From assembly GCA_030704615.1 (NCBI GenBank), contig CM060734.1, forward strand, positions 1,302,001 to 1,366,000: a DNA stretch of 64,000 nt, written 5' to 3'. Both the position numbers and the translations under genes were made by a program. Shown piece by piece: positions 8,023 through 59,303 of this stretch. Numbering within the stretch: the first letter of the stretch is position 1; each line of letters begins with the position of its first letter. This DNA comes from Takakia lepidozioides (lineage: Eukaryota; Plantae; Bryophyta). The notes under the pieces are model-generated. The model was not told the DNA's origin, made no database searches, and saw only the letters and a list, made by a program, of their open reading frames with translations.

Positions 8023-8499
8023 CACTAGAAGCATTCGTGTCTTTTCCGAATCGACTGGGTGTCCGCCAACCACTCCGGGAACCACTTGGCAGTAAGCGGG
8101 ACTACTAGAGAGTCGAAACGGACAATGTGGGCCCACGGGGGCATTTCAGACGGCGGGCAGAAGTGGGGTCAACGACTCCGGAGTCGTAGCAAAAATCCGG
8201 GCTATTTAATTAATTACGGAAATACGTAAAATTTGAAAAAACGGAAATTCCAAGTGGTTCTAATTACTGCACATGCGACTAGAAATTTTCATTCATAATT
8301 TGATTAATGGAATAAAGATATTTATTCATTAAAGTGAATATGTAGTGACTCAACGACTCCATGAACCACTGCGCATTGATTGCACCCGTGATTCGGGGCC
8401 ACATTTGCTTACGTGTGTTTCACAAGAACAGGTAAAGAAAATGTGGCCTTGGGGGAATAGATATTTTAATATGTACTGCCTCCACCTGGAAGTGACATG

Positions 8500-11400
8500 G
8501 AAGGTCCATGGTCCAGCTTGTAGGGTTTGTCGTTCTGAACACCGCCCTAGTGGACATGTATGCTGAATGCGGGAGCATTGAAGATGCGAAGGTAGTGTTC
8601 GATTGTGGCTCAATGAGATGTGGTGTCGTGGAGTGCGATGATCGCATTGGCAACAAGGCAAGGATGTATGCATGATTTGTGCAGAGGCAGTGATAGCTGA
8701 AGGAGCAGGATATAGTGTGGGTCCATATTCATCCAAGAGGGTCGGATTTCAAGCTCCAGATTACCTATGGATCCCTGTGGAAGGATAGCTACAAGAAACC
8801 TCCATGGGTACATGGTCAGCTGGAAGCGGCAGCTGTAGCGGCACAGTTGATAAAATCAGGCACCTCAACCATGACCACAGCTTCTGGAAGAGGATCAAGA
8901 GAGGGAGTCCACAATGCCTCTTCTGGCACTTATGGCATGTGAAGATGCTTTATGAGGCAGGCAGACTGAAAGAGGCTCTACAGATTTTAAACAGAGGCAT
9001 TTCAGCAGATGTAGATACGTATGTGTGTCTCTTGCATAAGTGCATCAAGATGAAAGGCCTAGAAGTTGGAAAGCAGGTGCACACTCACATTGTCCAAAGT
9101 GGATTCACGCCGAACGTTTTTCTACTCAATAACCTTGTCAACATGTATGTTAAGGGGAGCATCATGGATGATCACCAAGTGTTCAACACAGAATGCCTCA
9201 ACGATCTTTAATCACGTGGAATATAATGTTGGCAGGATTACCAAGCATGGGCATGGTACGAATGCTTTGGAGACCTGTGAGCAAATGCGCGAAGGGGTGA
9301 ACCCCAACCACATCGTGTTTGTATGTGTTTGCAATGCATGTGCAAGCCTGGAAAAGGGGAACGAGGTCCATGGTGACATCGGTCAAAGCTGGAATTGCAC
9401 CGGATGTCATTCTGAACACTGCCCTGACCTGGACATGTATGCCAAATGTGGATGCATTGAGGATGCAAAGGGAGTTTTCGACACTATGGCTAAACGAGAT
9501 GTGGTGTTGTGGAGTGCGATGCTTGCAGGGTATGCACAACAGGGACGTGGGATGGAGGCTTTGGAGACCTATGATCCAATGATGGGGGAGGGGGTGAAGC
9601 CCGGCCACTTTGTGTGCATTTGCAATGCTTGTGCAAGCCTGGCAGCCCTGGACAAGGGCAAAGAGGTGCATGGGGATATCATCAAAGCTGGAATTGTACC
9701 AAATGTCACTCTGAACACTGCCCTGGCAGCTCTGGAAAAGGGGAAAGAGGTCCATGGCGACATCTTCAGAGCTGGAATTGTACCAAATGTCAGTCTGAAC
9801 CATACCCTGGTGGACATGTATGCGAAATGTGGTGCATCGAGCCTGGACGAGGGCAAAGAGGTGCATGGGGTATCATCAAAGTGGAATTGTACCAAATGTC
9901 ATTATGAACACTGCCCTGGCAGCTCTGGAAAAGGGGAAAGAGGTCCATGGCGACATCTTTAGAGCTGGAATTGTACCAAATGTCATTCTAAACCATACCT
10001 TGGTGGACATGTTTGCAAAATGTGGGTGCAAAGGGATCTAGGATCTAGGATGCAAAGGGAGTGTTCGACACTATGGCTGAACGAGATGTGGTGTCGTGGA
10101 GTGCGATGCTTGCAAGGTATGCACGACAGGGACGTGGGATGGAGGCTTTGGAGACCTATGAGCAAAGGATGGGGGAAGCACATCATGTTTGTGTGCATTT
10201 GCAATGCTCATGCAAGCCTGGCAGCCCTGGAGACGGGCAAGAGGTGCATGGGGATATCATCAAAGCTGGAATTGTGCCAAATGTCAATCTGAACACTGCC
10301 CTAGCAGCTTTGGAAAAGGGGAAAGAGGTCCATGGCGACATCTTCAGAGTTGGAATTGTACCAGATGACATTCTGAACAATACCCTAGTGAACATGTTTG
10401 CAAAATGTGGGTGCATCTAGGATGCAAAGGGAGTGTTCGACACTATGGCTGAACGACATGTGGTGTCGTGGAGTGCGATATGATGTGCTTGCAGGGTATG
10501 CACAGCGGGGATGTGGAATGGAGGCTTTGGAGACCTATGAGCACATCATGTTTGTGTGCATTTGCAATGCTTGTGCAAGCCTAGCAGCGGGCCTGGAGTA
10601 GGCAAAGAGGTGCATGGGGATATCATCAAAGCTAGAATTGTACCAAATGTCAATCTGAACACTGCCCTGGCAGCTTTGGAAAAGGGGAAAGAGGTCCACA
10701 TGGCAACATCTTCAGAGCTGGAATTGTACCAAAGTGAATGCCTGTCAGATTACCAGATGCAAAGAGGTGCATGGTTGCATCGCCAAAGGCAGCAGCTGCA
10801 GCGGCACAGTTGATAAAGTCAGGCACCTCAACCATGACCACAACTTCTGGAAGAGGATCAAGAGAGGGAGTCCACAATGCCTCTTCTGGCACTTATGGGC
10901 GTGTGAAGATGCTTTGTGAGGCAGGCAGACTGAAAGAGGCTCTACTGACTTTAAACCAAGGAGGCATTTCAGCAGATTCAGATACGTATGTCTGTCTCTT
11001 GCATAAGTGCATCAAGATGAAAGGCCAAGTGAAGCTAGAAAGCAGGTGCACACTCATATTATCCAAAGTGCATGCCAAATATTTTTCTAGTCAACACCCT
11101 TGTCAACATGTATGTTATGTGCGGGAGCATCATGGATGCTCACCAAGTGTTCAACAGAATGCCTCAACGATCTTTCATCACGTGGAACACGATGCTTGCA
11201 GGGTGTGCACAGCAGGGGCGTGGTATGGAGGCCTTGGAGAATGTGGTGAGGGCACCTTCTTCTTCGACCTATTTCAGCCTGTTTTTCCCTCTCATCAGAC
11301 TCGGCCCTGAATTTTCATATTGAATTGTCAAGGACAATGTGGTGAGGGCACCTTCTTCTTCGACCTATTTCAGCTTGTTTTGCCCTCTCATCAGACTCGG

Positions 11401-12570
11401 CCCTGAGATGCATATTGAATTCTGTAAGTTAGCTCGTTAGGAGGATCTGTGGTGGTTTGAAATGACTATGACAAGTAACTGCCGATGTGGCAGCAGGAAA
11501 GTATCCAAAACAGATAACAGAGATGAGGAGAAGGTGTGGAATGAATACTTTGTTGACCCCAGTGAATGGTGGAACAACCGAGGCAAAAAGTTGAATGCCT
11601 ATTAGATGACAGAGAGTAGCAGACGCAATTCAGCATAGGAACTAGTGTGATTGGGTGTTTCCTAGGTTGTCATTGTCAGCTACTAGCAGCAAGGGCAAAG
11701 ATGAATGCATGATTTGTGCAGAGGCATGGATAGCTGAAGGAGAAGGGATAGAGTGTGGGTCCAGATTCATCCAAGAGGGCCGGACTTCAAGCTCCACATT
11801 ACCTGTGATTCCATGTGGATCAATAGCTACAAGAAAAAATGGGTAGATGGTCAACTAAAGGCAATAGCTGCAGCGGCACAGTTGATAAAATCAGGCACGT
11901 CCTCAACCATGACCGCAGCTTCTGAAAGATGATCAAGAGAGGGAGTCCACAATGCCTTTTCCGCGGGGCATGTGAAGATGCTTTGTGAGGCAGGCAGACT
12001 GACAAAGGCTCTAGGTCTGGAAGCTAGAATCAGGTGCACACTCACATTATCCAAAGTGGATTCATGCCAAATGTTTTTTCTACTCGACACCCTTGTCAAC
12101 ATGTATGTTAAGTGCGGGAGCATCATGGATGCTCGCCAAGATTTCTACAGATGCCTCAGCGATCTTTGATCATGTGGAATATAATGTTGGCAGGATTTAC
12201 CAAACATGGGTGTGGTAGGAATGCTTTGGCGACCTATGAGCAAATGTTGCGCAAAGGGGTGAAGCCCAACCACATCACGCTTCCGCATATTTGCAATGCG
12301 TGTGCAAGCCTAGGACCTCTGGAAAAGGGGAAAGAGGTCCATGGTGACATCGTCAAAGCTGGAATTATACCAGATGTCATCCTGAATACTCCCCTGGTGG
12401 ACATCTATGCCAAATGTGGGTGCATTAAGGATGCGAAGGGAGTTTTCAACACTATGGCTGAACCAAATGTGGTGTCATGGAACGCGATGCTTGCAGGGTA
12501 TGCACAGCAGGGACATGGTATGGAGGCTTTGGAGACCTATGATCAAATGATGGGGGAAGGGGGGGGGCAC
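8500..12570 (+). pseudogene. Fragmented, rearranged PLS-class pentatricopeptide repeat (PPR) sequences
   Basis: Recurrent motifs [86 protein letters not shown].LN, with many frameshifts and stops. Confidence 0.93.
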
Positions 12571-14570
12571 CTTCTTCAATAGCACAACGGCTACAAGTGG
12601 GTAGATGGTCAACTGAAAACAGCAATGGCAGCAGCACAATTGATAGAACAAGGCCACTGCTAATGAAGGTACCTTCTTCAACATATTTCACCTTGTTTTC
12701 CCCTGCTATCAGAGTCGTCCCTAAATTTTCATGTTGAATTCTACAAGTTAGCTCGTTGGTGGATCTATGGTGGTGTTGGAGTGATTTTGACATGTTACTG
12801 CCAATGTGGTCGACAGGAAAGTATCGAAAAACAGATAATAGAGATGTAGAGAAGCTCTGGAATGAATACGGTTCCGACCCCAGCCAATGGTGGAACAATC
12901 CAGGCAAAAAGGTGAATGCCTGTTGGAAGTAGACGCAAGTCAGCATAGGAACTAGTGTGATAAGTAGGGTTGGGGTGTTTGCTGGAACAATTCTAGAGTG
13001 TTATTGTCAGCTGCTAGCATCAAGGCAAAGATGTATGCATGATTTGTGCAGAGGCATGGATAGCTGAAGGAGCAGGGAGCAGTGTGGGTCCAGATTCATC
13101 CAAGAGGGCCGGATTTCAAGCTCTAGATTGCCTACAATTCCCCGTGGAAGCAGCGCACACCTCGCACACACAAGAGGTCCTCTTGGGTGCATGGTCAGTG
13201 AAATCCTCCATGGGTCATGACACAAGGTCGAGGACAATGTGGTGAGGGCACCTTCTTCTTCGACCTATTTCAGCCTATTTTTCCCTCTCATCAGACCCAG
13301 CCCTGAATTTACATATTGAATGCTGTAAGTTAGCTCGTTGGGTGGTGTGGGGTGGTTTGGAGTGACTTTGACAAGTTATTGCTGATGTGGCAGCAGAAAA
13401 GTACCCAAAAATAGATAACAAGATAAAGAGAAGCTTTGGGATGAACACTTTCCGATCCCAGTCAGTGGGGGACAATGGAGACAAAAAGGTGAGTGCTTGT
13501 TTGACTACAGAGAGAAGCAGTTGCAATTCAGAATTGGAACTACTATTAAGTCCTAGGTTGGGGTGTTTTCTGGAAGAACTTCATGCCGTCACTGTCAGCT
13601 GCTAGCAGCAAGGCTGAGGGATGTATTCATGATCTGTACACGGGCAGGGATAGCTGAGGGACCAGGGATAGAGGTCCAGATTCATGTTCAGGCTCAAGCT
13701 GAGGGATCAATAGCTAAAAGAAATCAGCTGGGGTAGATGGTCAATTGTTGCAAGTGGAAACGGTAGTGGCAGCACAATTGATAGAATGAGGTGCTGCTAA
13801 TGAAGGCACCTTCCTCAACACATTTCAGCCTGTTTTTCCAAATAGGGTTGGGGTGTAAGAACAAATCTAGGCTGTCATCATCAGCTGCTAGCAGCAAGAC
13901 AATGATATATGCATGATTTGTGCAGAGGCATAGATAGTTGAAGGAGCAGGGATAGAGTGTGGGTGCAGATTCACCCAAGAGGGCAGGCATCTTATTCAAC
14001 ACATTTCACCTTGTTTTTCCCTCTAATCAGAATCGGCCCTAAATTTCCATGTTGAATTCTGCAAGTTAGCTGGTTGAATGAATATAGTTTGGAGTGACTT
14101 TGACATGATACTGCCAATGTGACAACAGGAAAATATCAAAAAACAAGTAACAGAGATGAGGAGAAGTTGTGGAATGAATACTATTCTGCCCTAGTCAATG
14201 ATGGGACAACCAAGGCAAAAAGGTGAATGCCTGTTACATTTCATAGATTCAGCATAGGAACTAGTGTGAGAAGCTGAGTTGGATGTTTCCTAGAATAAAT
14301 CTAGGCTGTCATTGTCAGCTACTAGCAGCGAGGCAAGGATGAATGCATGATTTGTGCAGAGGCATATGTAGTTGAAGGCGTTGTTATATTCAATTATTGA
14401 AACCCTTCAAATAAACGACACGCCGTTCATTTTGGGCGACACACATCAGACTTCAAAAAGTACATTGCAGATGAACAGCAAAGAGAGTGTGGGTCCAGAT
14501 TTCAAGCACAAGATTACCTATGATTCCCTATGGATCAATAGCTACAAGAAACCTGCATGGGTAGATGATC
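11340..14570 (+). pseudogene. Repeated copies of an intron-split OSB-type PDF motif
   Basis: Exon A reads EKLWNEY.xDPSQWW(D/N)NRGKK followed by GT (ends ~11590, 12911, 13488, 14223). Exon B reads IHPRGPDFKHKITYDSLWINSYKKPAWVDGQL after CAG (11765, 13093, ~14490; also 8727). Confidence 0.8.
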
Positions 14571-15899
14571 TATTCCGTGGGATTCAATCTGTCACTGAGC
14601 CTTGCATTATGAGGATCACAATTGCTTGGCAGCTTACCTGCATGAGGCCTTGACCCTTAGGCAATCCCCAGAGCAGTAGTAGCTTTGGGCTGCTTTTTTA
14701 CTTTGGTTTTTTCATTTTGTATCATAAGCTCTTTGAGCTTTCCGCAGATGTAATGAAGTACCATTTGTTTCATTTCATTTTATTTTCATTTTGTTTTGTT
14801 TCATGGCATGTCTTTCATTGTTTTCGCATTTCTAATGACATGATTAGTTCTCTTGTATGGCATTACATGCGTATGTACTAGTCGGCTCATTACAAACACC
14901 AAAACTTCAAAGCATGAACCACTATGAGTGATTGTTCAAGTAATTTCGAGCACTTCATTTAAAGTAGTAAAGTAGTGGTTGCACTGACTTCCGCAGTCGC
15001 AATTGCCACTGGGCATGTAGCACTGCAAGTTATGTGGTCAACTACCACGTGGCGCCTCGGGCCCGTGGCCACGTGGCAGCAGTGCTGCTCGCCGTGGCGC
15101 CGCCATGTCGACGTCCACATCGTCGTCCACGTCCGCGTCCACGTCTGCGTCCATGTGTCACCATGCTCCGGCGAGTCAGTCCACTCATCCGGAGGGAAAA
15201 GTCAAAGTCAGCCCAAAAGGTCAGACGCACGGGCGCCCGCCTGGTTACACCACGTGGTTCTTCAGCATTAATCGCAATAATCGCTGAGCAGTTGTTCGCG
15301 CGTCTATGTCCTTTACCACTCCAATCATTGGATGTCCGACCCAACTTCCACGTCTGTTGTAACTAGTCGTTTGTAACTTCCAGTCGATCCCGGTTTTTTT
15401 ATTTTTACGACTCAAAATGAGTCGTTACCCCAGTGGTAAATGACACGAATGCTTCTAGTGAAGAGTGAGGGAGGTTTGTGAGATGGATTCATACATATTG
15501 CAATTTAAATGGTAGTTGATTCTTTAATTATTTTTCTTTTCAAAGGAACAACTACGGTGGAGGAAGGGGATTCAACGTTTTCCAAAGAGGATGAAACAGA
15601 ATATTAAAAGAACGTAGTTCAGTCTGAGTCAGAGTCAGTACAATGTATCCCCGCTTCCTCTGCATCTAAGTCTAAGTATTTAAGAACTCCGGATCTACGC
15701 TGGCTACACCTACGGCTGGGCAGTAAAAATTCAGGGGATAGGGACTCGGCCTCGTGAAGTGCCATTGCTTCGGCATAATCAGGAAGCAGAAAATTGGAAA
15801 GGGGGCTGTCGAAAACAGACTCGCCACAAATGACTGTATCTCCTGAAGATCCACCGCTGCCTTTCCTGAAAGACAGCCTGAAAAAATTATTACTGTAAC

Positions 15900-18200: not shown

Positions 18201-19924
18201 GAAGGTGTGTCTGGACCGAGGAATGAGGGGGGGGGGGGAGGGCAGATAAGCCAAGGGAGGCTCATCCTCCCCTCACTTCCTCTCCACACAACTTATGTGT
18301 GCGTGACATGTAACTATTCCACGACACGTGGACAAGGAGGCCATTGGCTGGGGGGGATATTTTTGCCGCGATTTCTGTGAAGTCGTTGCAAAATGCTTCT
18401 ATAGCCCCTCCTCTGGCTTCCGGGAACATTTCATTCTACAAAATTAACTTTTAATAATTATTATGACACTTATTCTGTTTAACTTTCCGTTACTTATTAG
18501 TAAACGTTGTTTAGGGTTGCTCCGATTGTTACAAAATGGCAGAGGGCCAGGACGATGAGCGTCATGGAAGAGATGACCCCTATGAACATGGACCGCCCCC
18601 TAAGAAAATCAAATGGTCAAGGCATGACTTGAATTGGGAAGTATATGATGACCCTAGCATACTAGCATAAGAGGGACGTGAGGATTTTCCGGAAGAGTTC
18701 AGGTGGCCGAGCACAAGATGCAAAAAATTCGTGAAATGGTATCATATCAATCGATTGTGGCCTAGACCTAGGCATGTGGTGCAAACCAGAAACAATTGCG
18801 CGGGACTCCAGGTCTTGCATGAACTTGCATTTCCAGCATAGGGCAACTGGGGTGCATTGCACGTTGCGGGGTGAACCACTCTTAAAGGGCTAAATCCCAT
18901 ACACCTTGACAACCATTTTGTACGTGGAGGTGATACTGTTGCGTCCAGTGAATTAGCAAACTGCTAGTAGGAGGAACGCAACGATGCAATACCATTTCGT
19001 CGACATCCCAGACACGTTTGGAACACCCCCAGCTACGATACTGGACGTGCGCGAGGCACCGGTGCAACAAGTATCTGGAACGTTAGAGGATGAACTGGTG
19101 AAAACAAAACAGCGAGTCCGAACCCTACAAGACCTTGTGGAATGGCAAAGACTGCACATAGTCGAGTTGGAGGGTACATTGCAAAACACACCTCGAAACA
19201 ATGAATGCACTGTCCACAATGACGTTCGAACGAACGACGTGGACATGTGCGCGGAGTTTACAATGCTAGATCGCAGTATTGACCGCATCATTGCCGGAAT
19301 TACGGACGTCCTTGACCCTCGCCACGTCGTGAGATTCTGCAAGAAATTCAACTTTCGCCGCAAAGTAAGCGGATTCTGGTCAGAATTAATCACATGTCAT
19401 TGGGCCCCTCATTGACCACGAGATCACGGTCCCAGGCTCTCCGTATTGACAGTGCAAATCAAGCCACAACCACATCCCTTGTCCCCGGACAGTAACGACG
19501 AGGATTCGATTGAGTAGTAACGTAGTACATAGACAATGTGGATTTTTGTTGTACCTTGAATTTCTGTAACACACTGATAGCACTCCGCCAATTTTGTATA
19601 TGCACCAATTTTGTTAATACACATGTGCGGCACCTGCAAATTTCAATTGCATGAGCACCGTAACGCGTTTTCTTCCGGTTTTGCACTCATGTGATGGGGA
19701 AGAAGTGGTTCACCCTCAAATTTACAATGGTGTAATATTTGGTCATGACGTGTATGTGGGTATCTGCAATGAACTCCGAAAGATGGGCAACAAGGAAAAT
19801 GGATGTTAACCAATAAGTTATAACGAGTTACGAATGCTCGTCTTCCTGACAAATTTTGCTTAGTCTCGTATTTTATAATCATGTCGAGAATTCAATCTAC
19901 GTATGAAGAACATACCCACAAAGT

Positions 19925-21777: not shown

Positions 21778-21832
21778 CTTGGTATCAAAGCTTAGAGTTC
21801 AGTACACGATCATCCTTGGAATCGGCCTCATC

Positions 21833-31379: not shown

Positions 31380-31394
31380 GGTCGCCTTACTTTT

Positions 31395-31800: not shown

Positions 31801-31807
31801 CAAAAAA

Positions 31808-43715: not shown

Positions 43716-43719
43716 GTGA

Positions 43720-46078: not shown

Positions 46079-48279
46079 GTAATCCTTGCTGCACCTCTGG
46101 TCTCGATGTCTTGTGTCTCTATCTCCATATCTGTCCCTCCTTTCCCTCTCTCCTCATCACCCTCCCCCTCACCATCTTCCGCTCAAACTAGGCACAGGGT
46201 ATTATCAAACTGATATGTCCCTGTTTCCCTCTGTGACTGAAAGAAGGAACCCCAGAATTGAAGTGAAATGGCAGCAGATAGCAGGGAGAATGACATAAGG
46301 ATTACGGCAGAGTACATCATGGCCACCAACATATTTATCACTGTGAGGGGAGTAAGGTGGTAGTCTACAGATACAACAATCTCTACCATTAAAGACTGCA
46401 TCAATTTTTGAACCAATGGACATCTCTGGTAAGAAGAGTACGCAAAATAAAGATTGGCAGACTTTGTACAAGGACATGGTTACTCATGCTTTGTGAGAAA
46501 CTTCTGAGTCAACAACACCCAACAAGTCGACTTTCTGAGTATCCACCTAAAGGGAATGGCACTGATGCATTTGAGCCACATTGAGGGGGAGGGAGAGAAA
46601 ACGAGAGAGCAAGAGGCGGGTGCAAGAAATGCACTGCAGAACCAAACCTACAGGTTCTGCCGCGGTAAGTTCAGAGTTCACCTTATTTGTTTGTGACATA
46701 TTGTTTTTAGCCAATAACAGCCACCCTTAACTGGCTGGACGGATGAAAGCCGGTCGCTGTTTCTTCTTCTTTCCTGCCCTCTTGTTCGCAAAAGCCTGGC
46801 CTTCGTCGTCTTGCCCCTGGGATCTGGGCGTGGAAGAATTGGTGCGATTCACACCATGCAATACACCCCTCCCTGTCAGCACACGTATAATTAAACTCAT
46901 ATGTGCAATGACTTGCCATTGGATAGAACTGCCATGCATATCTCAAAGCCAGTGACATATCATTACAATTGACAAGATTATTGCTAGCACTTTTTTTTTA
47001 TGGTTTTCCAGGTTCACAATGGCTTGTCCCATATACCCAAAGGAATTGCCACACCTTTAACATGTTCTTTTAAGTAGTAAACAACCTTTTGCGCCATGGC
47101 ATGGGTTTTGATTCCCTTTGGCAAATGATGTCATTTGGATGTAATCAAGTAAGCTAATTTGATATGTGGATTATGATAGCGCCGTTGTACAAGCTGGTCT
47201 TGGCTAGGACAATTTGGTTGGAAAAACACTTTCACAATATCTTTTGACTAAGCGGAAGCCCAATGCTGAAGTCCCCGCTCTCACAACCACTTGTAGATGT
47301 TAATGCGGAGAGACGGATAAATATGCTTTAAATAAGATAGGGCCCATCCTTGAAAAGGGGCAGCAGCCGCAAGGGGTTAGTTACGTCGGCCTCGGCCGGA
47401 GTCTTCTCTCTCTCTCTCCTTTAAATAATGAAAAAATAAATGCTGAATGCCAGAACAAATCTGCGTTAAATACAATACAACAAAGCATTTTTCATGAATC
47501 CGTGACATTAAATCAAAACCCAAATGATCTAAAATTTAAACCAATTGCAAATAAAACAAATATGATATCCAAATCTGCCTGTTGTATCAAAACGAGCCCC
47601 ACCATCATTACATTGGGCGAATCAATATGAAATGAAATACATGTTCATCTCTTCATAAAACTTGAATATACCCCATCTATATGGACTTTGTTCTCATAAG
47701 CTGTCACTAGTACTGGTGCGGAGCAACGCAAAGCCCTAGTGATATGATACAAAGATAATGAAACACTACAACAGATGAGCGTTTTTATGACTACGGTTTC
47801 GGCGGAGTCATAAAAACGACACTAGATATACGACTACAGAGCACTGAAATGTATTGTAGTCATAGTTTTATCACTCTGTAGTAATGGATATCAGTACATG
47901 ACTCCGGAAAGATAGGGAGCATTGGTCAAACATTGTTGATCACGATGACAGGGATGGTTTACATGACTAGTGTGATATGTTTCGCTACACGTGGACGACG
48001 TCTCATGGAAACGTATGACTTCATGATTAAGGATGGATTCATAGCTCTGTTTATACGACTACAATGTCACTACATGTGTCATTTTGAAGGCACATACACA
48101 AATGTATTCATCCATTGGATGAGTTCATTCATCAATGATCAAAATGCAAAAGGTTAAAAAAATTCAAAAATGTTGTTTATAGGGTTGCCCATTAGGTAGC
48201 CGTGAACTGAGGGCTGGGACTTTTTGGGCTCCTTTTGGGCTTTTTGGTCTCCAGCCACACCATCTGTTTTCTTAGTATC

Positions 48280-51200
48280 CACGAGCCTAGAGATGTTGTG
48301 TGGAACGCGATGATTGCAGGCTATGCAGGGGCGTGGGATAGAGGCTTTGCAAACCTATTCTTTAGCAAATGATGCAGGAAGGGCGAGGATATGCACAGCG
48401 TCGACGTGGTATAGAGGCTTCGGAGACGTATGAGCAAATAATGCGAGAAGGGGCGAAGCCGGACCGGGTCACGTTCGTTTGTGTTTGCAATGCGTGTGCA
48501 AGTTTGGCAGCTCTAGAAAAAGGTAAAAGGTCCATGGTGACATTGTCAAATTTGGAATTGTATCCCATGTCATTCTGAACGATACCCTCGTGGACATGTA
48601 TGCCAAATGTGGCAGTATTGAGGATGCAAAGGGAGTGTTCGAGACTATGGCTGAACGAAATGTCGTGTCATGGAGTGTGATGGTCACGGGATATGCCCCA
48701 TCATGGATGCAGGATGGAGGCATTGGAGACCTATGAGCAAATGATGCTGGAAGGGGTAAAGCCAGACCCGGTCACGTTCGTTTGTATATGCAATGCGTGT
48801 GCGAGTCTGGCAGCCGTGGAAAATGGCAAAGAGGTTCATGGTGACATCATCAGAGCTGGAATGTACCCGAAGTCATTCTGAACAATACCCTCGGTGGACA
48901 TGTATGCGAAATGTGGGTGCATCATGGATGCGAAGAGAGTTTTCAACAGTATGGCTGAACGAGATGTGGTGTCGTGGAACACGATGCTTGCGGGGTATGC
49001 ACAGCAAGGCCGTGGGAAGGAGGCTTTGGAGACCTATGATCAAATGATGGTGAAGGGGTGAAGCCCGACCACATCACGTTTGATTGCATTTGCAAGCCTG
49101 GCAGCCCTGGAAAAGGACAAAGAGGTCCAATGTGACATTGTCAGAGCTGGAATTGTACCCGATGTCATTTTGAACAGTACTCTCGTGGACATGTATGCAA
49201 AAGGAGTGTTCAACAGTATGGCTGAACGAGATGTGGTGTCGTGGAGTGCGATGATTGCAGGATATGCACAACAAAGGCGCGGGATGGAGGCTTTGGAGAC
49301 CTATGAGCACCTTCTTCAACACATTTCAGCCTGTTTTCCCTGAACTATCAGAGTCGTCCCTAAATTTTCAGTTGAATTCTACAAGTTAGCTCGTTGGTGC
49401 AAAAAGGTGAATGTCTGTTGGAAGCGCAAGTCAGCATATGAACTAGTGTGATAAGTAGGGTTAGGGTGTTTGCTGGAACATATCTAGGCTGTCATTGTCA
49501 GCTGCTAGCAGCAAGGCAAAGATGTGTGCATGATTTGTGCAGAGGCAGAGATAGCTGAAGGAGCAGGGATAGAGAGTGGGTCCTGATTCATCCAAGAGGG
49601 CCAAATTTCAAGCACAAGATTACTTATGATTCCCTGTGGATCAATAGCTATAAAAAACTTGCATGGGTAGATCGTCAACTGGATGCCACAGCAACAGTGG
49701 CACAACTGATAAATTTAGGCACTGGTAATCAAGGCACCTTCTTCAACACATTTCACCCTGTTTTTCCCTCTTATCAGAATCGGCCCTAAATTTCCATGTT
49801 GAATTCTTCAAGTTAGCTGGTTAGTTGGGTGGAAGTATGTGGGAGATGTTAACCCTGATTATGGTTGACGGTTTTAGTGTATTATGATATGATGTTATCC
49901 ATCTCAGAAGTGTATGTTTCTCTTGCACACTTTGTCAGAATCATCTGGTCTGCGCTCTTGGCTCCTGTTAGTACCATGATTTGGTATTCTTCCTGATGTT
50001 TACAAGATTCTTGGGAGTGTCAGCTTGGTCTTAGCAAGCCGTGTTTCAATCTCTGCCCGCTCAGCTGCACCATGGTGGTTCTCACAGACCAATTCGACAT
50101 TACCTGACTACAGACACAAGCAGCACACACAAGAGGTCCTCTTGGGTTCATGGTCAGTCAAATCCTCCATGGGTCATGACACAAGGTCGAGGACAATGTG
50201 GTGAGGGCATCTTCTTCTTCAACCTATTTCAGCCTGTTTTGACCTCTCATCAGACTCGGCCCTGATATGCATATTGAATTCTGTAAGTTAGCTCGTTGGG
50301 TGGATCTGTGGTTGTTTGGGATGACTTTGTCAAGTTTCTGCCGATGTGGCAACATGAAAGTATCCAAAAACAGATAACAGAAATGAGGAGAAGCGTTGGA
50401 ATGAACACTTTTCCAACCCCAGTCAATGGTGGGAAAATGAGACAAAAAGGTGAATGCCCGTTGGACTACAGAGAGAAGCAGATGCAATTCAGAATTGGAA
50501 CTTATATTGTAATAAGTACTTAGGGCTGGGGTGTTACTGGAAGAACTTCACGCCGTCAGTGTCAGCTGCTAATAGCAAGGCTGAGGATGCATTCATGATT
50601 TGTACACAGGCAGGGATAGTTGAAGGACCAGGGATAGAGGTCCAGATTCATCCCAGAGGGCCGGATTTCAAACTCAAGATTACTTCTGATTCCCTGTGGA
50701 TCAATAGGTATAAGAAATCTGCGTGGGTAGATGGTCATGAACTGGAAACAGCAGCAGCAACAGCACAATTGATAGAACAAGGCACTGCTAATGAAGGTAC
50801 CTTCTTCAACACATTTCACCCTGTTTTTCCCTGTTATCAGAGTCGTCCCTAAATTTTCATGTAGAGTTCTGCAAGCTAGCTAATGTTGGCAGGATTTACC
50901 AAGCATGAGTGTGGTAGGAATGTTTTGGAGACCTACGAGCAAATGTTGCGCGAAGGGGTGAAGCCCAACCACATCACGTTTGTTTGTGTTTGCAATGCGT
51001 GTGCAAACCTGGGACCTCTGGAAAAGGGGAAAGAGGTCCATGGTGACATCGTCAAAGCTGGAATTGTATTAGATGTCATTTTGAACACTGCCCTGGTGGC
51101 CATGCAGTATGCCAAATGTGGGTGCATTAAGGATGCGAAGGGAGTTTTCAACACTATGGCTGAACGAGATGTGGTGTCATGGAACGCGATGCTTGCAGGG

Positions 51201-52730
51201 TATGCACAGCAGTGATATGATATGGAGGCTTTGGAGACCTATGCTAAAATGATGGGGGAAGGGGGCACCTTCTTCAATAGCACAACGGCTACAAGTGGGT
51301 AGATGGTCAACTGGAAATAGCAGCGGCAGCAGCACAATTGATAGAACAAGGCACTGCTAATGAAGGTACCTTCTTCAACACATTTCACCCTGTTTTTCCC
51401 TGTTATCAGAGTCGTCCCTAAATTTTCATGTAGAATTATGCAAGCTAGCTAATGTTGGCAGGATTTACCAAACATGGGTGTGGTAGGAATGCTTTGGAGA
51501 CCTATGAGCAAATGTTGCGCGAAGGGGTGAAGCCCAACCACATCACGTTTGTTTGTGTTTGCAATGTGTGTGCAAACCTGGGACCTCTGGAAAAGGGGAA
51601 AGAGGTCCATGGTGACATCGTCAAAGCTGGAATTGTATCAGACGTCATTCTGAACACTGCCCTGGTGGACCAGTATGCCAAATGTGGGTGCATTAAGGAT
51701 GCGAAGGGAGTTTCCAACACTATGGCTGAACGAGATGTGGTGTCATGGAACGCGATGCTTGCAGGGTATGCACAGCAGGGACATGGTAAGGAGGCTTTGG
51801 AGACTTATGAGAAAATGATGGGGGAAGGGGGCACCTTCTTCAATAACACAGCGGCTAAGTGGGTAGATGGTCAACTGGAAACAGCAGCGGCAACAACACA
51901 ATTGATAGAACAAGGCATTGCTAATGAAGGTACCTTCTTCAACATATTTCACCCTATTTTTCCCTGTTATCAGAGTCGTCCCTAAATTTTCATGTTGAAT
52001 TCTGCAAGTTAGCTTGTTGGTGGATCTATGGTGATTTTGGAATGATATTGACATGTTACTGCCAATGTGGTCGACAAGAAAATATCAAAAAACAGATAAT
52101 AGAGATGAGGAGAAGCTCTGGAATGAATACGTTTCCAACCCAGTCAATGGTGGAACAATCCAGGCAGAAAGGTGAATGCCTGTTGGAGGCAGAGGCAAGT
52201 CTGCATAGAAACTAGCGTGATAAGTAGGGTTGGGGTGTTTGCTCGAACAATTCTAGGCTGACATTGTTAGCTCCTAGCAGCAAAGCAATGCATGATTTGT
52301 GCAGAGGCATGGATAGCTGAAGGAGCGGGGATAGACTGTGGGTCCAGATTCATCCAAGAGGGCCGGATTTCAAGCTCCAGATTACCTATGATTCCCTGTG
52401 GAAGGATAGGTACAAGAAACCTGCATGGGTAGATGGTCAACTGGAAGCCGCAGCAGCAGCGACACAATTGATCAAATCAGGCACTGTTAATCAAGACACC
52501 TTCTTCAACACATATCACCCTGTTTTTCCCTCTTATAAGAATTGGCCCTAAATTTTCATGTTGAATTCTGCAAGTTAGCTGGTTGAGTGAACTTTTGATA
52601 GTTTGGAGTGACTTTGACATGATACTGCCAATTTGACAACAGGAAAGTATCCAGAAAATAGGTAACAGAGACGAGGAGAAGCTGTGCAATGAATACTTTT
52701 TTGACCCCAATCAATGGTGGGACAATCGAG
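48280..52730 (+). pseudogene. Shuffled PLS-PPR and PDF-motif fragments
   Basis: PPR tracts at 48280-49305, 50883-51260 and 51452-51830. PDF exon A/B pairs around a ~176-196-bp GT-AG intron (e.g. 52172-52347, 50450-50645). Confidence 0.9.
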
Positions 52731-52732
52731 GT

Positions 52733-52866
52733 TTTGGGCTGATGAGCACGACCCCTGCAGGGATGTCTCTCATCTCATGAAGAATCTTCGGGTGTGTGGT
52801 GACTGCCACACTGCCACCAAGTTCGTTTCGAAGTTGTTGGCCGAATGCAGTTGTAAGGAGTATTGC
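52733..52866 (+). pseudogene. C-terminal remnant of a DYW cytidine-deaminase domain
   Basis: FGLMSTTPAG.. then LMKNLRVCGDCHTATKFVSK..ECSCKEY. The HxE motif and the RDxxRFHHF segment are absent. Confidence 0.85.
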
Positions 52867-53699
52867 ACTCGTTAGTTGTAAATAGAGTCCTTCATTCTAG
52901 GAGAGTATCAGAACTGGAATAGTACTAAAAAACTTATGCCCTTGTGTGGGCTTGCTAAATTTTTGCTCTGCCTTAGACTTTGAGGCATCCGTGGGGATGC
53001 TTGTCCAATTTCGAATTTTGTAATATAATTTACAGGGCTTGTACTCTCCTGTACATGTCAACTTATCCTCCTAGTATGTAGGACAACAGTGGCTTCCATT
53101 CTATTTTCCCAAAAACATAATGAAGAATTTAAATCAATTAATAATCTAAATTTTATAATTTTATTTATTAAATTAAAAACATTATTCAAAAAACCTCTTT
53201 ATGACATGTGTTAGTCATACCTGTGGACATGTAGTCATATAATGTAGTCATGAAGTTATATACTCATGACTACATCACTACATGTGGCATTATATGATAC
53301 GATATTCTTTCCCACATGTAGGTCATATATGTTGTCCACGTGGACACGTGTCACATCCACCGCTATGACTTGCACAACGCAGTCATAAAGGATGGTTGCT
53401 ATGACAAGGTTTTTTTTCACTACAAAGTGATGTAGTCATGAACGCATATAAGACTGAAAATATAGTCATATGTGCAGTCATAAAAACGCTCATCTGTTGT
53501 AGTGAAAACGATACGCTTATCTTACGCTCAAACGATACGTTCAAATGTATACACAAGTGAAACCATACAATCCTTTACATGTACTATAGACAATGGATTT
53601 TGTCTTGTCTTAAGGATGAGCAAACATGTTAAATATATTTGTTTCAGTCATGTTGAGTACCTCTGCTATTTGGAGATTTGGATTAGCCTCCATGTCATT

Positions 53700-54372
53700 C
53701 CCAGACTCATCCATGTCCATTGTTAGGGGAGGGAATCCTGCAAAGTCATCTTCACTGGCATTCGGGGGGCCAACCAATCTACAAAATGCATGTTATGAAG
53801 ATTAGAACTTGTGTATTAAACAATTGAACTATCATAAACAAATGGTGTACTAACTTACCCACATTCTCGCTCATTTGATTGGAACTTGGCCGCAGGCACA
53901 TGGCTCTCAATGTATCTGCCATTTTGTGTGATTTTGCGAACTCGATGGAAATTCCATGCCTCAACAAGCCTGTCAAGGTCCTCTTGCTTAGTTGGCAAGA
54001 AGACAATGTACACTGACATTTTGTGCCAAGGATCTCGGATGTCAAGAATATCCCTATTCGCCATGAGAGTCAGAAGATGCTTGAAGAAGAACATGCAATG
54101 AGTCCATATATAACGCCACCAATGCTCAATTCTCTGCACATAATATTTACAACCTTATGCATTACATTAGTTTATCCATGCTTTTGTGTAGCTACAACAA
54201 CAACAAATCAATGAAAAAAAATTAAATAAAAGAAGTGCTTCATATCTGATTATGGACAGATGCACCTGTGAGAAATGTATTAGGCACTGAAGGTCGAGCT
54301 GCCTCCATATCTTCCCGCACCAACACATGTTCACCTGCAAAATCTGATCGGATTCGGAGGGGATGTCCAAAT
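53700..54372 (-). pseudogene. IS3EU-like DDE transposase fragment with introns
   Basis: FGHP/RIRSDFAGEHVLV..FLTGASVHNQ, intron 54245-54134 (donor mutated to AT), then RIEHWWRYIWTHCMFFFKHLL..LD..VFLPTKQEDLDRLVEAWNFHRVR. The N-terminal part is missing. Confidence 0.8.
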
Positions 54373-55628
54373 CATCGAATTGTAATGACTGTGGGGCTTG
54401 TTTTGATACAACGGCAAGCAGACTTGGATTATGATTGTTGTTTATATGATATCTTTTTTATTTAATTGAATGAGCTAGAGCAGCTAGAGGCGAGCAAATG
54501 AGATAAAAACAAAGGCATCAGGACAAAATGACAAGGAAAAGAAACAACAAATCTTGGTCAATAATACACTACATCCCCCAGAAATTTTCTGTATTTCAGA
54601 ATGGGCACCTTGCTGGGCTTGCTGCACTTTACTGGCAAGAGGGGCCCAGTAACCATCAGAGAGTTCTCAATGAGTTTACTAGGCTCTCACAGGGGTATAT
54701 ATTGTATGTATTGACTAGGACTGTGTCAAGGAGTCAGGCACTCTGGTTGCACAATATAAGCTTTGGGTTTTATGATCAATGACAAAGCACTTTGTACACT
54801 AAAAATATTTTTGTATGTGACATTCTGGTTATATCTTGGGTGCACAAAACAAAAGCTGTTTTTGTCTGATCTGACATCTTGGGTGTCTGTCCTTAATGAG
54901 AACTTGCTAGGGCTTGGAGGGGATCTCAACTTGAAAAGCATAAATCAATCAAAGCTCAGTAAAGCAACCATCATGGGAAGTAAGAGTTACACATATCAAT
55001 TCCAATCTTTAACATGACGAGTGGAAATGGGTTTGGACAGTTATAGCTCTAACTTGCGAGTCCCAAGTTCCACAAGTGACACTGTAGAAATGGTCTGAAA
55101 GGTCACTTTACAAAACTTTTACATTGACATGTGGCATGTGTACTGCACATTCACTACCAATGCCCATGAGTTTAAACCACCATTTAGCTGCTGCTAAAAA
55201 GACCCAAATGGATGAGTCGCAATCCACTGGCGGAAGTGTCACTTGGAAAAGGCTTAGCTTACAAGTGTTTCTAAGACAATGGGGTAAACTACACCTATGC
55301 AAAGTTCGAACCAGTAAAATGCAATGACAATTATTAGGCACTACCAACCCTTCCTGTCTGGGATCTGTCTCCCCTGCACTACTTTGTCAGTGTCATCCTC
55401 AGGTGTAACTATTCACAGCATACAGGTCAGGAAGCAACCACAATGATGTAAGGCTGTCCAAAGCACACAGAATTAGAGGGTAAACACAGGTAGGGGTGAT
55501 GCACACGCCTCAACATCAAATCCCAATCAACCATCCACCCGAAGAGTGGGTCCTCAATCACAGTTTGCACTTAGCCAGACTACTGCTATTCCCCAGTAGC
55601 CAGAATCTACCACCACAAAACTTGTTGC

Positions 55629-56158
55629 CTAATAGTAGGGCCTGTGGCGCATAGGTCGCCTGAACATAGCCGCCTTCCTGACATGGTTTCACCCAATAGG
55701 TATCAGTTTTATGAGATTAATCCGTCAGTCTTCCGAACCTTCATGGCAACTACAGCATTTAACTCAGAGCTCTTTAGTCTAACCCATAAAAGGTAGTTGA
55801 GGTCCTTACAGATGTTCTACAGCACAGTGAGAAGTGCCAAAAAACACAGTTGCAGGCACCCGAAAAACTTTTAGCATGAAAAACTAGACATTTGTAGCCA
55901 ACATAATCATCCTTGCAAGCTGTAGACACTACTATGAAGTTAGCTTGCACCACAAACAACAAAGATTGAACTCTGCTATGAAATATGCACACCACATGAG
56001 TTAGAAAGGAAATTCCTTGTGGATACCCACCCATAACCATAGGGAGTATACCCATAGGGAGCCAGGTAGGGCCTCCTGGGGCGGTACCCATAATAAGGGT
56101 TGAATCGGCGGCCTCGAAATGCCTTCATTCCTGGCACATTAGTCCTCTTTAAGGTCAC
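55629..56158 (-). pseudogene. PABN: Captured last two exons of a nuclear poly(A)-binding protein (PABN/PABPN1-like)
   Basis: VTLKRTNVPGMKAFRGRRFNPYYGYRPRRPYLAPYGYTPYGYG, intron, then KAAMFRRPMRHRPYY*. No RRM exons seen upstream. Confidence 0.85.
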
Positions 56159-57254
56159 ATGCAACCATGTCTCCACAGAGAGACTTGTCAGCTAACCAAC
56201 CCGACTGCTACCCTTCAGAGTTGCTGTCCACTACCCAAAAGGGGTTGCTTAAGGTATCTAATGAAGGTTATAAGTACGGAATGGTCATGCTTGGAGGGAG
56301 GGAGAACGGAATGGATGACAGCAGGAGGGATACCAACAAAAAGTGCAGTGGTGGGAAATGAGCTTACCCCTGTTCTTTGCTGGTTTAATCCAGCACTTGT
56401 GACTATGAATAAATAACCATTGGGCTCCAAGGTTGTCCCAACTGTGCCAGAAAGCAAGGAAACATATAATCCATATTGACATGACAAAATATATGAATGA
56501 ATCCTTGTTCCTGCAGCTCTAGCAATCTGCCGATACTAATACTGCAATTCACCAGTCACTGGTAATTCAATAGCCTTGCCTGTGCACAGGCCAATTACAG
56601 ATTTTGAGAGAGAGCCACCTACTTGGGAAGCGTGGGCTGGGTTCACTACATCCCTAATAATATTCTCCATATTCAGAGTCCCAAACATGTGCCAACAATC
56701 TCTCCCCTTGCCCCTAGAAGCCCCACACCATCCACACAAACCCATCAGCCATCTTTCTTTAAGCTTAGCTTCAACCATCTTTTGTGGCATCAAGACTTCA
56801 GTACAAACACATGAGCAAAGACACCACGACACATGGCATAACATTGCACAATCCCATGAGGTAATAGCATCTGGAAAGCGATTTTACAGATAGAGAAAGT
56901 GGGTTTATGACAAGAGGACTTACTGGTACATCTTGCAAATCTTGCAGACCATTGACTGTTTTGTTTACAGTATTTCTCTTCTCCTACAGGCCCCAATGCA
57001 AATAGTCACACCATGCAGTAGGAGAACCAGTAAACCGAAGAAGAGCTCCAATATGTCAGGCAAAGTCAATTGCATCCACCAGGGGGAAGGGGTAGGTTAA
57101 ATATCAGGCTCCTGCAGGAAATTACTGGAAAATTCCTTACATGGAAGAACCTTTCAGTAGAAATTACAAATGGAGAGAAGTGGGTCGAAGTCATCACTGT
57201 GCTGCACTCCCATCCATGATAGAGGTCTGCTATTATGCTAGGGTACTAAGTACA

Positions 57255-58675
57255 GGGGGCCCAGGCTTCCACATGCATTGAGAACACAATTGAACGTGAC
57301 CTTGTCTGGCATCACCCTTTCCCCCATCATTTGCTCATAGATCTGAAGAGCCTCCCTGCCACAACCACGCTGAGCATATCCTGCAATCACGGTGTTCCAT
57401 GCCACCACAAATTTAAACCATGAAGGAGGGCTTGCACCAGGAGTGTGACTTACCTTTACAAAGAAAGGAAGTAAAGAGAATCTTTGTGACGTCTTCGGCC
57501 TGGATGACAATTCTACTGCCGGAATCTATCCTCCACTTTACTTCTGTGGCTATGTGAAGAAATTTTAGGGGTAGAAAAAAAGAGAAATGAAAAATGACAC
57601 TAACATCCGTGGATAGCTCAAAGAGCTTATGGACAAGAGAAAACATGAAACAAGAAAGAGAGAGGGGCCCTCCACAAGCAGCCCAATCGTTCAAGGGATT
57701 CTAAGAGTCAACACCTCATGCAGATATGCTGCTAAGAAAGAAAGAGAGTGTAGGGGCCTGCAAAGAGAGAAGGGATTGTGTGCATCATATGTTTCAATGA
57801 CTTCGCATTCTCAAGTTGCTTTCCAAACTACGAATGCCTACCTGGAGCTCCGTGACAATAAGACCTAGATGTTGAACATTTCGGTTGGAGTCTGAGAACT
57901 CATGGAGCAAGTGCAAGTTCTCCTGCACGAATTGCTGAGATTCCTGTTGGTGTTCTCCCTCTTTTCGAATAACTGCATCCTCCAACACCTTCACAAATTT
58001 TTTCCTGTCGCGATATGCAACGGATCAGGCCTAAAAGACATCCATACTTCATGTTGCGTGCGTACCACAGGGAAAGAGAATGTCAGTTCCATTCCAAGTA
58101 TCCCATACAGTTGTCAGCAAAGGTGGTCCAACTTGATAAATTGACTCAGCCCTGTCTGATTTTGCACCAGTGTGGACAAGGATGCACATGAAAAGGCACA
58201 GTGTGGGGTACTACCCCTTCCAGTATCATTTGCTCATAGATCTGCAGAGCCTCCCTACCATACCCATTCTGAGCATATCCCGTGATCATGGCGTTCTAAG
58301 AGACCACATCTTGTTGAGTCATATTGTCAAACACTTTGCGCGCTTCCTTAACGCTTCTACATTTAGCATTGACAACAAGGGCTGTCTCGAGAATGATATG
58401 TGACCCAATTCCAGCTTTGATGCTGTCAGCATGTACCTCTGTGCCCTTTCAAGAGCTTGGAGGCTCCCACACGCACGAAGAACGCAGACAAATGTCACCT
58501 TGTTTGGGGTGAAGAACCCTTGGTGTTTCACTTGCTCATAGAGGCCAAAAGCTTCCCTAGGACTCTCATACTTTTGCATATCCTGAGATCATTGCACTCC
58601 ATGAGACCACATTGCGATCAGGCGTTTTGTCAAACATTTGACGTGCATCCTTCAAGCTCCCACATTTGGCATTCT
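57255..58675 (-). pseudogene. PLS-class PPR fragments (57255-57410, 58210-58675) mirroring the left-arm copies, flanking an unidentified coiled-coil exon
   Basis: VVAWNTVIAGYAQRGCGREALQIYEQMMGERVMPDKVTFNCVLNACGSL is nearly identical to 43337-43490. Exon 57842-58015 reads KVLEDAVIRKEGEHQQESQQFVQENLHLL..ELQ followed by GT. Confidence 0.85.
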
Positions 58676-59135
58676 GTAAACACCGCACTTGAGCTTGAGC
58701 GTCAGACATTGCGCTTCAGAGAGCTCAAGAAGTAATTTTCGGTTCTTTTTGGGGCAGTCCGGGCAGGTTATACTTGAGCTTCGAAGTTATTGTGTCACTT
58801 GGCAGGGACAAAAGTGACAATATTTCTTTTCCTGGCATTACTGGACAGTTTAGCCAAACCCACGGTGACGGTGATCTTGCCCGTCGCCGTGAGCCGTCTC
58901 CGTCCCCTCTCAAATAGTACACCGTATTTGATTTAATAAAAAAAGTTTGAGAAAATTTGATGTCGCCGGGCAGCTGAAAAGTGGAATATATATCTTTTCC
59001 GGATAGTTTCGCCAAACCGACGGAGACGGTCAAAGCGTCCGTCACCATGGACGGTGACGGTGAACGGCGTCCGTCACCATTGATTGTGGCGGGCTCCGTG
59101 AGCCGTCTCCGTCCCCGCCCAAATAGTATTCCATA
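58654..59135 (-). repeat. Right TIR
   Basis: Inverted copy of 42675-43163; the spurious ORFs 42796-43086(+) and 58725-59048(-) translate almost identically. Confidence 0.93.
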
Positions 59136-59303
59136 TGAAACACCAATTTTGAAACACCACCGATGCTCTCAGTTTAATTGTTGAATTAAAAGAATAAATA
59201 AAATACAGACAAAAACAATTATCTACCGAGTGGGGAACTCAAAGGTCCAATTTCATTACTACCTAACACTGCAGCAGTAAAATCAGTTAACAAAGTACTA
59301 GAG

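Follow-up and report, generated by a model that had tools for sequence, protein, structure and literature searches.

Pack-CACTA transposons and gene capture by GingerRoot elements are both known already, as is a grapevine CACTA transposon with part of a PPR gene inside it. Pack-CACTA and the wider Pack-TYPE transposons have been published (Catoni et al. 2019, PMC6379663; Gisby and Catoni 2022, PMC8903248), and Cactavine-5, from grapevine, is a CACTA element with a fragment of a PPR gene (Benjak et al. 2008, PMC2528002). GingerRoot, or IS3EU, elements (Cerbin et al. 2019, PMC6839031; Kojima 2023, 2025, PMC10045372, PMC12730594) are known among plants only from lycophytes and bryophytes (PMC6839031, PMC10045372, PMC12730594), and in Selaginella lepidophylla 29% of GingerRoot elements contain intron-containing gene fragments, often without a transposase (PMC6839031). 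In fungal transposons, TET/JBP passenger genes are passed passively between DNA transposon families (PMC12730594).

Here, we analyzed a window of 64,000 nucleotides from the bryophyte Takakia lepidozioides (contig CM060734.1, positions 1,302,001 to 1,366,000), which probably contains three non-autonomous transposons with transduplicated, scrambled, and dead PPR cargo, one origin accounting for the cargo of two CACTA elements (CACTA-A and CACTA-B) and another for that of a GingerRoot-type element (Table 1).

Table 1 Positions of transposons, termini, and cargo, counted from the first letter of the window
Feature	Position	Strand	Basis or remark
CACTA-A, non-autonomous Pack-CACTA, 7,438 bp	8023-15460	+	Ends and TSD
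CACTA-A TIRs	8023-8041 and 15442-15460		
CACTA-A TSD, AAG	8020-8022 and 15461-15463		
CACTA-A cargo, scrambled and repeated parts of PLS-PPR gene(s) with a PDF motif	8316-14647	+	
Unnatural junction in CACTA-A, PPR P-motif (..MMGEGG) fused to PDF-module tail	12552-12579	+	
Retained GT..AG intron in CACTA-A, 182 bp	12912-13093	+	Within PDF motif
Decayed DNA transposon, probably IS3EU/GingerRoot type, 16,461 bp, ends TATGG..CCATA	42675-59135	.	Structural hallmarks
Its TSD, TGAAAC, 6 bp	42669-42674 and 59136-59141		
Its left TIR	42675-43164	+	95.7% identical to 59135-58653
Its right TIR	58653-59135	-	
PPR fragment, left arm	42998-43855	+	PPR starts within TIR at ~43115
MFS transporter gene fragment, at least 3 exon pieces	44730-46071	+	Captured cargo of the long-TIR element
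CACTA-B, non-autonomous Pack-CACTA, 5,741 bp	47764-53504	+	Ends and TSD; nested in the GingerRoot-type element
CACTA-B TIRs	47764-47792 and 53476-53504		
CACTA-B TSD, AAA	47761-47763 and 53505-53507		
CACTA-B cargo, PDF/PLS-PPR mosaic common to CACTA-A	48247-52866	+	
Retained intron in CACTA-B cargo	52172-52347		
Degenerate DYW C-terminal tail, ..NLRVCGDCH.. then truncated	52753-52866	+	In CACTA-B cargo
Transposase remnant, PF24764 integrase core, two exon-like pieces	53858-54371	-	Pfam profile
PPR fragments, right arm (57100-57525 and 57951-58823)	57100-58823	-	

CACTA-A and CACTA-B both have the 5'-CACTA...TAGTG-3' ends in short TIRs and the 3-bp TSDs of the CACTA (EnSpm) superfamily. The TIR of CACTA-A is perfect over 19 bp (25 of the first 30 bases match), and its 17-mer terminus is present in exactly two copies in the window, inverted to each other; that of CACTA-B spans 29 bp (29 of 30 terminal bases match), and its TSD, lying in an A-rich site, is weaker evidence than that of CACTA-A. 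Both subterminal regions of CACTA-B show typical subterminal repeats, with 9-mers occurring three to five times each, and those of CACTA-A have only short GTCCAC-type runs, without any 9-mer present three or more times. When the terminal 500-900 bp of the two elements were compared, no similarity was found beyond CACTA. PPR-gene-derived DNA makes up ~60% of each, and a Pfam scan of their ORFs of at least 120 aa returned PPR repeats or nothing, with no transposase domain. Both fit the Pack-TYPE definition, host gene fragments lying between intact TIRs without a transposase of their own. Metagenome contigs scanned for the CACTA-B TIR yielded no copy.

The third element has the TA..TA termini (in the TAYGG..CCRTA form), 6-bp TSD, and long TIRs of IS3EU/GingerRoot transposons; its TIRs are 490 bp long at 95.7% identity, and the outermost 33 bp of the left one recur 210 bp further inward. 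Inside it, two pieces matched the PF24764 integrase core (5e-13 and 5e-5), with profile positions 62-103 at 54243-54371 and 102-171 at 53858-54154, separated by an intron-like gap of ~88 bp; positions 1-61, the first third of the core, were not found in the element. Look-alikes of the transposase piece in the protein atlas all carried PF24764, and a word-index search with the 99-aa piece gave no candidate in its length range. The element thus appears to fit IS3EU/GingerRoot, an assignment made from structural hallmarks and a partial integrase-core match. Its transporter fragment retains an intron at 44910-45262, which opens with GTGAGT, closes with AG, and separates the ..MGVGE codons from those of GVAMP. 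Ten other ORFs within the element matched no Pfam family, and a metagenome scan with its subterminal 21-mer gave one chance match (L004), which was unrelated. For the transposase, transporter, and PDF models, exons were searched one by one.

The original prediction had given all three elements intact TIRs and TSDs, had called them Pack-type, and had placed PPR sequence only inside them. The ends were found intact and in place, and the description as DNA transposons carrying gene fragments is supported. A window-wide tblastn search with 285 PPR proteins (E ≤ 0.01) identified 10,299 bp of PPR-like DNA, every base of it within element boundaries, and the repeats in the cargo were confirmed by Pfam. 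That the elements moved with this cargo is suggested by their TIRs and TSDs alone. All CACTA cargo lies on one strand. That of CACTA-A consists of N-terminal PDF modules, LCEAGRLKEAL-type first repeats, P-L-S triplet units, and partial L-motif duplications, with many stops and frameshifts; in CACTA-B, a tandem unit of ~570 bp occupies 50723-52020 in copies that are 94% identical. The P-L-S triplets measure 303 bp. The best protein matches to the PPR sequence were from Diphasiastrum, at less than 50% identity. Exact-product look-ups of a window PPR ORF and of P0001, P0121, and P0127 returned no record. Separately, the gypsy polyprotein had no match above 42% identity.

The cargo also records how it was captured. 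Its PDF modules contain GT..AG introns of 176-182 bp, located in CACTA-A between the ..WWNNxGKK codons and those of IHPRGPDFK, and a Diphasiastrum homologue (L003) is interrupted by an intron at the same position, immediately behind WWDNRLMK. Because introns were kept, in the PDF module of the CACTA cargo as in the transporter fragment of the GingerRoot-type element, the cargo was taken as genomic DNA, in agreement with the DNA-level capture that had been predicted. In Sphagnum, Diphasiastrum, and Adiantum, PLS-PPR proteins with a PDF motif at the N-terminus occur naturally; in view of such proteins, we rejected a chimeric cargo in which the PDF modules would come from part of an OSB ssDNA-binding gene. 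The PPR locus L001 of Diphasiastrum showed PPR-level similarity only to the window (65-73%) and lacked transposon ends.

Every PPR cargo copy in the window is pseudogenic. The longest stop-free stretches run to 299, 178, and 197 codons, and each is itself a patchwork with frameshifted, out-of-order partial units; nowhere in the cargo of the window does one unbroken ORF hold about 10 or more P-L-S motifs in order. The order of motifs is not natural; L-L-L runs occur, for example, and a PDF tail is joined to a P motif. The sole E/DYW-related sequence in the window is the DYW tail, which has an internal deletion and has lost its terminus, and neither an E1/E2 region nor a complete DYW deaminase domain was detected in the window. 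Between CACTA-A and CACTA-B copies, dN/dS was 0.91 and 0.68, estimated from 26-34 substitutions only. No intact PPR gene with flanking TIR relics was seen in the window. Since all the cargo is broken, nothing in the window shows the production of working editing factors.

These observations bear on the idea that Pack-type elements materially amplify and recombine PLS-PPR arrays and that some of the products become new working RNA-editing factors. Duplication and reordering of PPR modules within the elements are real, and parts of PPR genes were copied at the DNA level with their introns. The expansion of PPR genes in Takakia has been ascribed to retroposition, and the loss of introns in only 52% of dispersed PPR duplicates (PMC13386178) leaves room for a DNA route. 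However, the broken copies, the unnatural motif order, the missing E1/E2 region with a DYW domain reduced to a truncated tail, dN/dS near 1, and the lack of an intact PPR gene between TIR relics in the window all argue against functional products, and we regard this reading as improbable. The suggestion that the elements may spread and recombine PPR arrays was borne out for duplication and reordering inside the elements, and working products received no support.

It is slightly less probable still that the main role of transposon-borne PPR pieces is to supply small RNAs that hold down expression across the PPR family. The left and right PPR arms of the GingerRoot-type element mirror each other at 95-98% identity, in blocks split by indels, and form an extended inverted repeat. 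Silenced transposons are a common source of siRNAs, and in flowering plants some small RNAs target PPR genes. The same idea was proposed for the grapevine CACTA with a PPR fragment (PMC2528002). However, the arms lie 14 kb apart, the CACTA cargo is confined to one strand, no Rfam family was matched, and the cargo units are only 62-80% identical to the other PPR sequences compared, which is low for siRNA targeting.

The history of the cargo was traced by comparing units between elements. Those of CACTA-A and CACTA-B correspond one by one at 91-95% identity (for example, A_12185 with B_51453 at 92% and A_12488 with B_51190 at 95%), whereas adjacent units inside one CACTA element are only 55-60% alike. 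A contiguous match of 1.3 kb at 84% spans the PPR-to-PDF junction, and the unnatural fusion of a P-motif to a PDF tail recurs, identical, twice in CACTA-B (51254-51277 and 51820-51843). PPR units in the arms of the GingerRoot-type element are 62-76% identical to CACTA units and 68-73% identical to a Diphasiastrum PPR gene, so the CACTA units are no closer to them than that gene is; the arms contain no PDF modules. The shared, rearranged cargo of CACTA-A and CACTA-B would clearly exemplify how transposon families exchange a passenger.

The unit-for-unit match and the identical unnatural junction leave at most two capture lineages in the window, and this contradicts, for CACTA-A versus CACTA-B, the proposal of three independent PPR captures by unrelated transposons, which would imply that DNA transposons have a specific affinity for PPR genes. 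The three sets of termini do differ, as had been predicted of three separate elements, and the PPR sequence of the GingerRoot-type element is unrelated to the CACTA cargo; their separateness was overstated, as CACTA-B is nested and the cargo of the two CACTA elements has a common origin. The GingerRoot-type element also took a transporter fragment. In hornworts, lycophytes, and Takakia, the PPR editing-factor families run into the thousands. PPR genes are very numerous in such genomes, so capture by chance is not unlikely. We consider three independent captures very unlikely. Extremely improbable is the explanation that the elements merely inserted into an older PPR pseudogene cluster, or that the arrangement is an assembly artefact, which has no specific support and is opposed by PPR sequence that ends 300-900 bp inside every terminus, by flanks free of PPR sequence around all elements, and by perfect TSDs, which indicate that the flanks were contiguous before insertion.

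We thus favor two origins of dead cargo in three non-autonomous transposons. CACTA-A and CACTA-B would belong to different families, presumably moved in trans by different transposases because their ends and subterminal regions are unrelated. The cargo of both would go back to a single copy, rearranged beforehand, of a PLS-class PPR gene from the PDF-motif subfamily, and the copied DNA would then have been scrambled and tandemly amplified inside the elements, giving the 303-bp triplets and ~570-bp units. It may have reached two CACTA families through template switching during gap repair or because one scrambled donor locus was captured more than once. The GingerRoot-type element would have gained a different PPR fragment, now in its extended inverted repeats, together with the intron-containing transporter fragment, and the insertion of CACTA-B into it would be a later, nested event. 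The elements shuffle and spread PPR modules as DNA, and the outcome in the window is dead arrays, not editing factors.

Retroposition is the usual explanation for PPR expansion, and these elements reveal another mechanism, in which PPR modules are copied as DNA with their introns, multiplied, and reordered. As the window holds only dead arrays, the practical point for now is annotation: PPR mosaics carried by transposons can swell the counts of PPR genes and confound analyses of duplication mode. A broader proposal is that two or more superfamilies of DNA transposons (Pack-CACTA and GingerRoot among them) provided this early-branching land plant with a second, DNA-level route of PLS-PPR dispersal and motif-array recombination beside retroposition, and that some present-day editing factors, or a sizeable share of annotated PPR genes, are such cargo or descend from it. 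We think this unlikely, but if intact descendants exist genome-wide, they would represent a new route to RNA-binding specificities.

The two CACTA elements resemble Pack-CACTA in being non-autonomous, in their 3-bp TSDs, in the subterminal repeats of CACTA-B, and in an interior of host gene fragments, introns included, that have been merged and rearranged. Unlike Pack-CACTA, their cargo is almost wholly of the PLS-PPR family and tandemly amplified inside the element, one rearranged cargo is shared by two CACTA families whose ends are unrelated, the host belongs to the non-seed plants, and the elements are known from sequence. With Cactavine-5 they share a transduplicated PPR fragment in a CACTA element, and an antisense or regulatory RNA role has been raised for both. 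However, Cactavine-5 is an autonomous-type family in which two copies carry one PPR fragment in antisense, whereas here large multi-unit PLS arrays account for ~60% of non-autonomous elements.

The long-TIR element has the TA..TA termini, 6-bp TSD, and long TIRs of GingerRoot/IS3EU, in the exact TAYGG..CCRTA form of fungal IS3EU. GingerRoot/IS3EU elements encode an integrase-related transposase, of which the integrase-core pieces here may be a remnant, and the 490-bp TIRs of the long-TIR element compare with 100-150 bp in S. lepidophylla GingerRoot and more than 30 bp in fungal IS3EU. Unlike published GingerRoot elements, it carries a PPR fragment in the extended inverted repeat of both arms, a cargo not mentioned in the GingerRoot paper (PMC6839031), and hosts a nested Pack-CACTA. 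Finally, whereas the TET/JBP passenger is a functional gene thought to aid its transposon and the cargo here is a decaying mosaic of host genes, the two systems are alike in that a homologous passenger resides in families whose ends are unrelated, and the borders of the shared segment bear no signature.

Two elements, CACTA-A and CACTA-B, emerged from a scan of the window for paired CACTA...TAGTG termini that match each other and are bordered by a 3-bp duplication. The 17-mer terminus of CACTA-A has exactly two occurrences in the window, in inverted orientation, and the subterminal regions of CACTA-B contain short repeated motifs, as is typical of CACTA elements. The two show no similarity across their terminal 500-900 bp, in agreement with the original prediction of unrelated terminal inverted repeats (TIRs). 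The whole of CACTA-B is nested within a third, 16.5-kb element, whose ends form the longest inverted repeat of the window and which is flanked on both sides by the same 6-bp target site duplication (TSD). As had been predicted, all three elements have intact ends and TSDs.

Coordinates of the elements, their cargo and other features of the window
Feature	Position	Details
CACTA-A	8023-15460	19 terminal bases matching perfectly; TSD AAG
CACTA-B	47764-53504	29/30 terminal bases match; TSD AAA
Third element	42675-59135	TIRs 42675-43164 vs 59135-58653, 95.7%; TSD TGAAAC
Repeated 33-bp TIR sequence	42682-42714; 42892-42924; 58887-58919; 59096-59128	Terminal copy recurs 210 bp inward; mirrored
Transporter-fragment intron	44910-45262	GTGAGT..AG
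PDF motifs	8709-8879; 10738-11307; 49559-49786
Intact PDF-motif intron, CACTA-A	12912-13093
Intact PDF-motif intron, CACTA-B	52172-52347
P-motif/PDF-tail junction	12552; 51254; 51820	Identical
Truncated DYW tail	52753-52866
Ty3/gypsy retrotransposon	19893-31397 (~19.9-31.4 kb)	ORFs of 1007 aa (gag-PR-RT-RNaseH) and 322 aa (integrase)
120-bp tandem repeat arrays	19893-20949; 27288-29692	In Ty3/gypsy LTR-like regions
Further partial gag copy	29726-31379
MITE-like element	59403-59635	233 bp; perfect 26-bp TIRs
SBF-matching ORF	39197-39673 (-)	Exon-sized; E 2e-22
RNase H ORF	1198-1890 (+)	230 aa; E 5e-12
Tandem repeat	31802-32253	~64 bp period; copies 82-89% alike

ORFs from all three elements match PPR repeats in Pfam. 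Using tblastn with first 120 and later 285 PPR proteins as queries, we found 10,299 bp of PPR-like sequence, 100% of it inside CACTA-A or the third element, as claimed originally, and none in the element flanks. Each terminus is separated from the nearest PPR sequence by 300-900 bp, and the perfect TSDs indicate that the flanks were contiguous prior to insertion. The PPR sequence is therefore cargo of the elements, and insertion into existing PPR sequence is ruled against.

Elsewhere in the window, the Ty3/gypsy retrotransposon (gag, protease, RT, RNase H, and integrase) has no PPR content. The MITE-like element adjoins the third element on the outside and has neither cargo nor a clear TSD. 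The ORF with similarity to sodium/bile-acid symporters (SBF family) probably belongs to a host gene for a BASS-type transporter, and the RNase H ORF to another retroelement.

The cargoes of CACTA-A and CACTA-B consist of P-L-S triplet units and a recurring "PDF"-motif module (..WWNNRGKK.. ..PDFKH..LW..). This motif is known from organellar ssDNA-binding OSB proteins (PMC6963530). A second captured gene was considered as its source and rejected, since natural PPR proteins start with it: in 16 of the 285 a complete PDF motif is followed by the usual first repeat (LC.EGRLKEAL) and the PPR array. The species represented among the 16 include Sphagnum jensenii, Diphasiastrum complanatum, and Adiantum capillus-veneris; the two proteins that match the cargo best, P0121 and P0127, also belong to this set. 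The copy at 10738-11307 retains this natural order in frame. Pieces of PDF-PLS-DYW PPR gene(s) thus account for the whole CACTA cargo. PDF-starting PLS-PPR proteins (P0022, P0012, P0121, P0127, P0030, P0139, P0181, and P0220) come from moss (Sphagnum), lycophyte (Diphasiastrum), and fern (Adiantum), and some natural ones carry two PDF motifs of the OSB type. A literature search combining "PDF motif" and "pentatricopeptide" found no description of this architecture.

In the Diphasiastrum gene for P0012, an intron lies right after the WWDNRLMK codons, inside the PDF motif. At the same codon position the cargo has GTGAAT, followed 176-182 bp on by ..CCAG and the IHPRGPDFK codons, and the five-residue spacing across the intron equals that of the natural protein. 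In the Sphagnum homologue this intron is absent. Retention of this intron bears out, for the PPR cargo, the prediction of DNA-level capture.

Unit by unit, the cargoes of the two CACTA elements are orthologous (A_12185 vs B_51453, 92% identity; A_12488 vs B_51190, 95%), and neighboring units in one element are just 55-60% alike. A collinear 1.3-kb match (12182-13480 vs 51450-52730, 84%) spans PPR into PDF sequence, and in both elements a P-motif (..MMGEGG) is fused to a PDF-module tail at a junction that has no counterpart in natural proteins. Both cargoes thus descend from one rearranged ancestor. There are two obvious routes: template switching in gap repair could have placed the rearranged cargo between two unrelated end pairs, or one scrambled donor could have been captured twice, by A and by B. 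Passive passenger transfer between transposon families is on record for fungi (PMC12730594). Duplication continued within each element after the split: CACTA-A holds three units 91-92% alike plus additional partial L-motif copies, and CACTA-B a tandem unit of ~570 bp with copies 94% alike. Triplet amplification like that of the window's cargo is seen in a Diphasiastrum complanatum locus (CM055101.1; L001 9978-11829): a PPR "gene" annotated there as 349 aa long comprises, together with the following ORFs, at least six tandem P-L-S triplets of 89-94% DNA identity, with no CACTA ends within 10 kb.

The third element contains a PPR fragment in both arms, within an extended, indel-ridden inverted repeat. 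These units show 62-76% identity to the CACTA units, no closer than to a Diphasiastrum PPR gene, and PDF modules are missing from the arms; this is a separate acquisition. With the common origin of the A and B cargoes, the window therefore shows two capture lineages rather than three. The element also holds at least three exonic pieces from an MFS transporter gene, which may resemble those for PHT4/ANTR-type transporters. The repeated 33-bp TIR sequences may be transposase-binding sites.

None of the cargo could encode an editing factor. The longest stop-free stretches (299, 178, and 197 codons) include frameshifted patches, the unit order is not natural, the E1/E2 region is absent from the cargo, and only a truncated DYW tail is present. 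The dN/dS values between A and B copies are 0.91 and 0.68, from few sites. The original observation is confirmed, and the proposed engine for shuffling editing factors is partly supported: DNA-level capture and the duplication and reordering of PPR parts inside elements hold, but the products here are broken.

Pack-CACTA elements are established from earlier work, as is their shuffling of genes (PMC6379663, PMC8903248), and in 2008 a PPR fragment was reported within a grapevine CACTA element, with the same antisense idea (PMC2528002). A 2026 survey attributed early land plant PPR expansion to retroposition, with intron loss in just 52% of Takakia dispersed PPR duplicates (PMC13386178). In the searchable literature we found no report of bryophyte or lycophyte transposons carrying PLS-PPR arrays. 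This window adds one rearranged PPR cargo common to two CACTA families with unrelated ends, the tracing of that cargo to a parental PDF-motif PPR gene whose intron is conserved, and an independent PPR capture within GingerRoot inverted repeats.

The elements themselves belong to known kinds, Pack-CACTA and gene-carrying GingerRoot. The termini of the third element (TA..TA) have exactly the TAYGG..CCRTA form described for fungal IS3EU (PMC10045372, PMC12730594). Two exon-like minus-strand pieces match the PF24764 integrase core (profile positions 62-103 and 102-171), as do their atlas look-alikes; no match to the first third of the core turned up in the element, so this copy is decayed. GingerRoot was described in Selaginella lepidophylla and among plants is confined to lycophytes and bryophytes; 29% of intact S. 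lepidophylla elements hold gene fragments with introns (PMC6839031), so IS3EU-like transposons that capture genes already have precedent in land plants. In its TA..TA ends, 6-bp TSD, and long TIRs the third element fits this published group, and its integrase-core pieces may derive from a transposase of the same kind.
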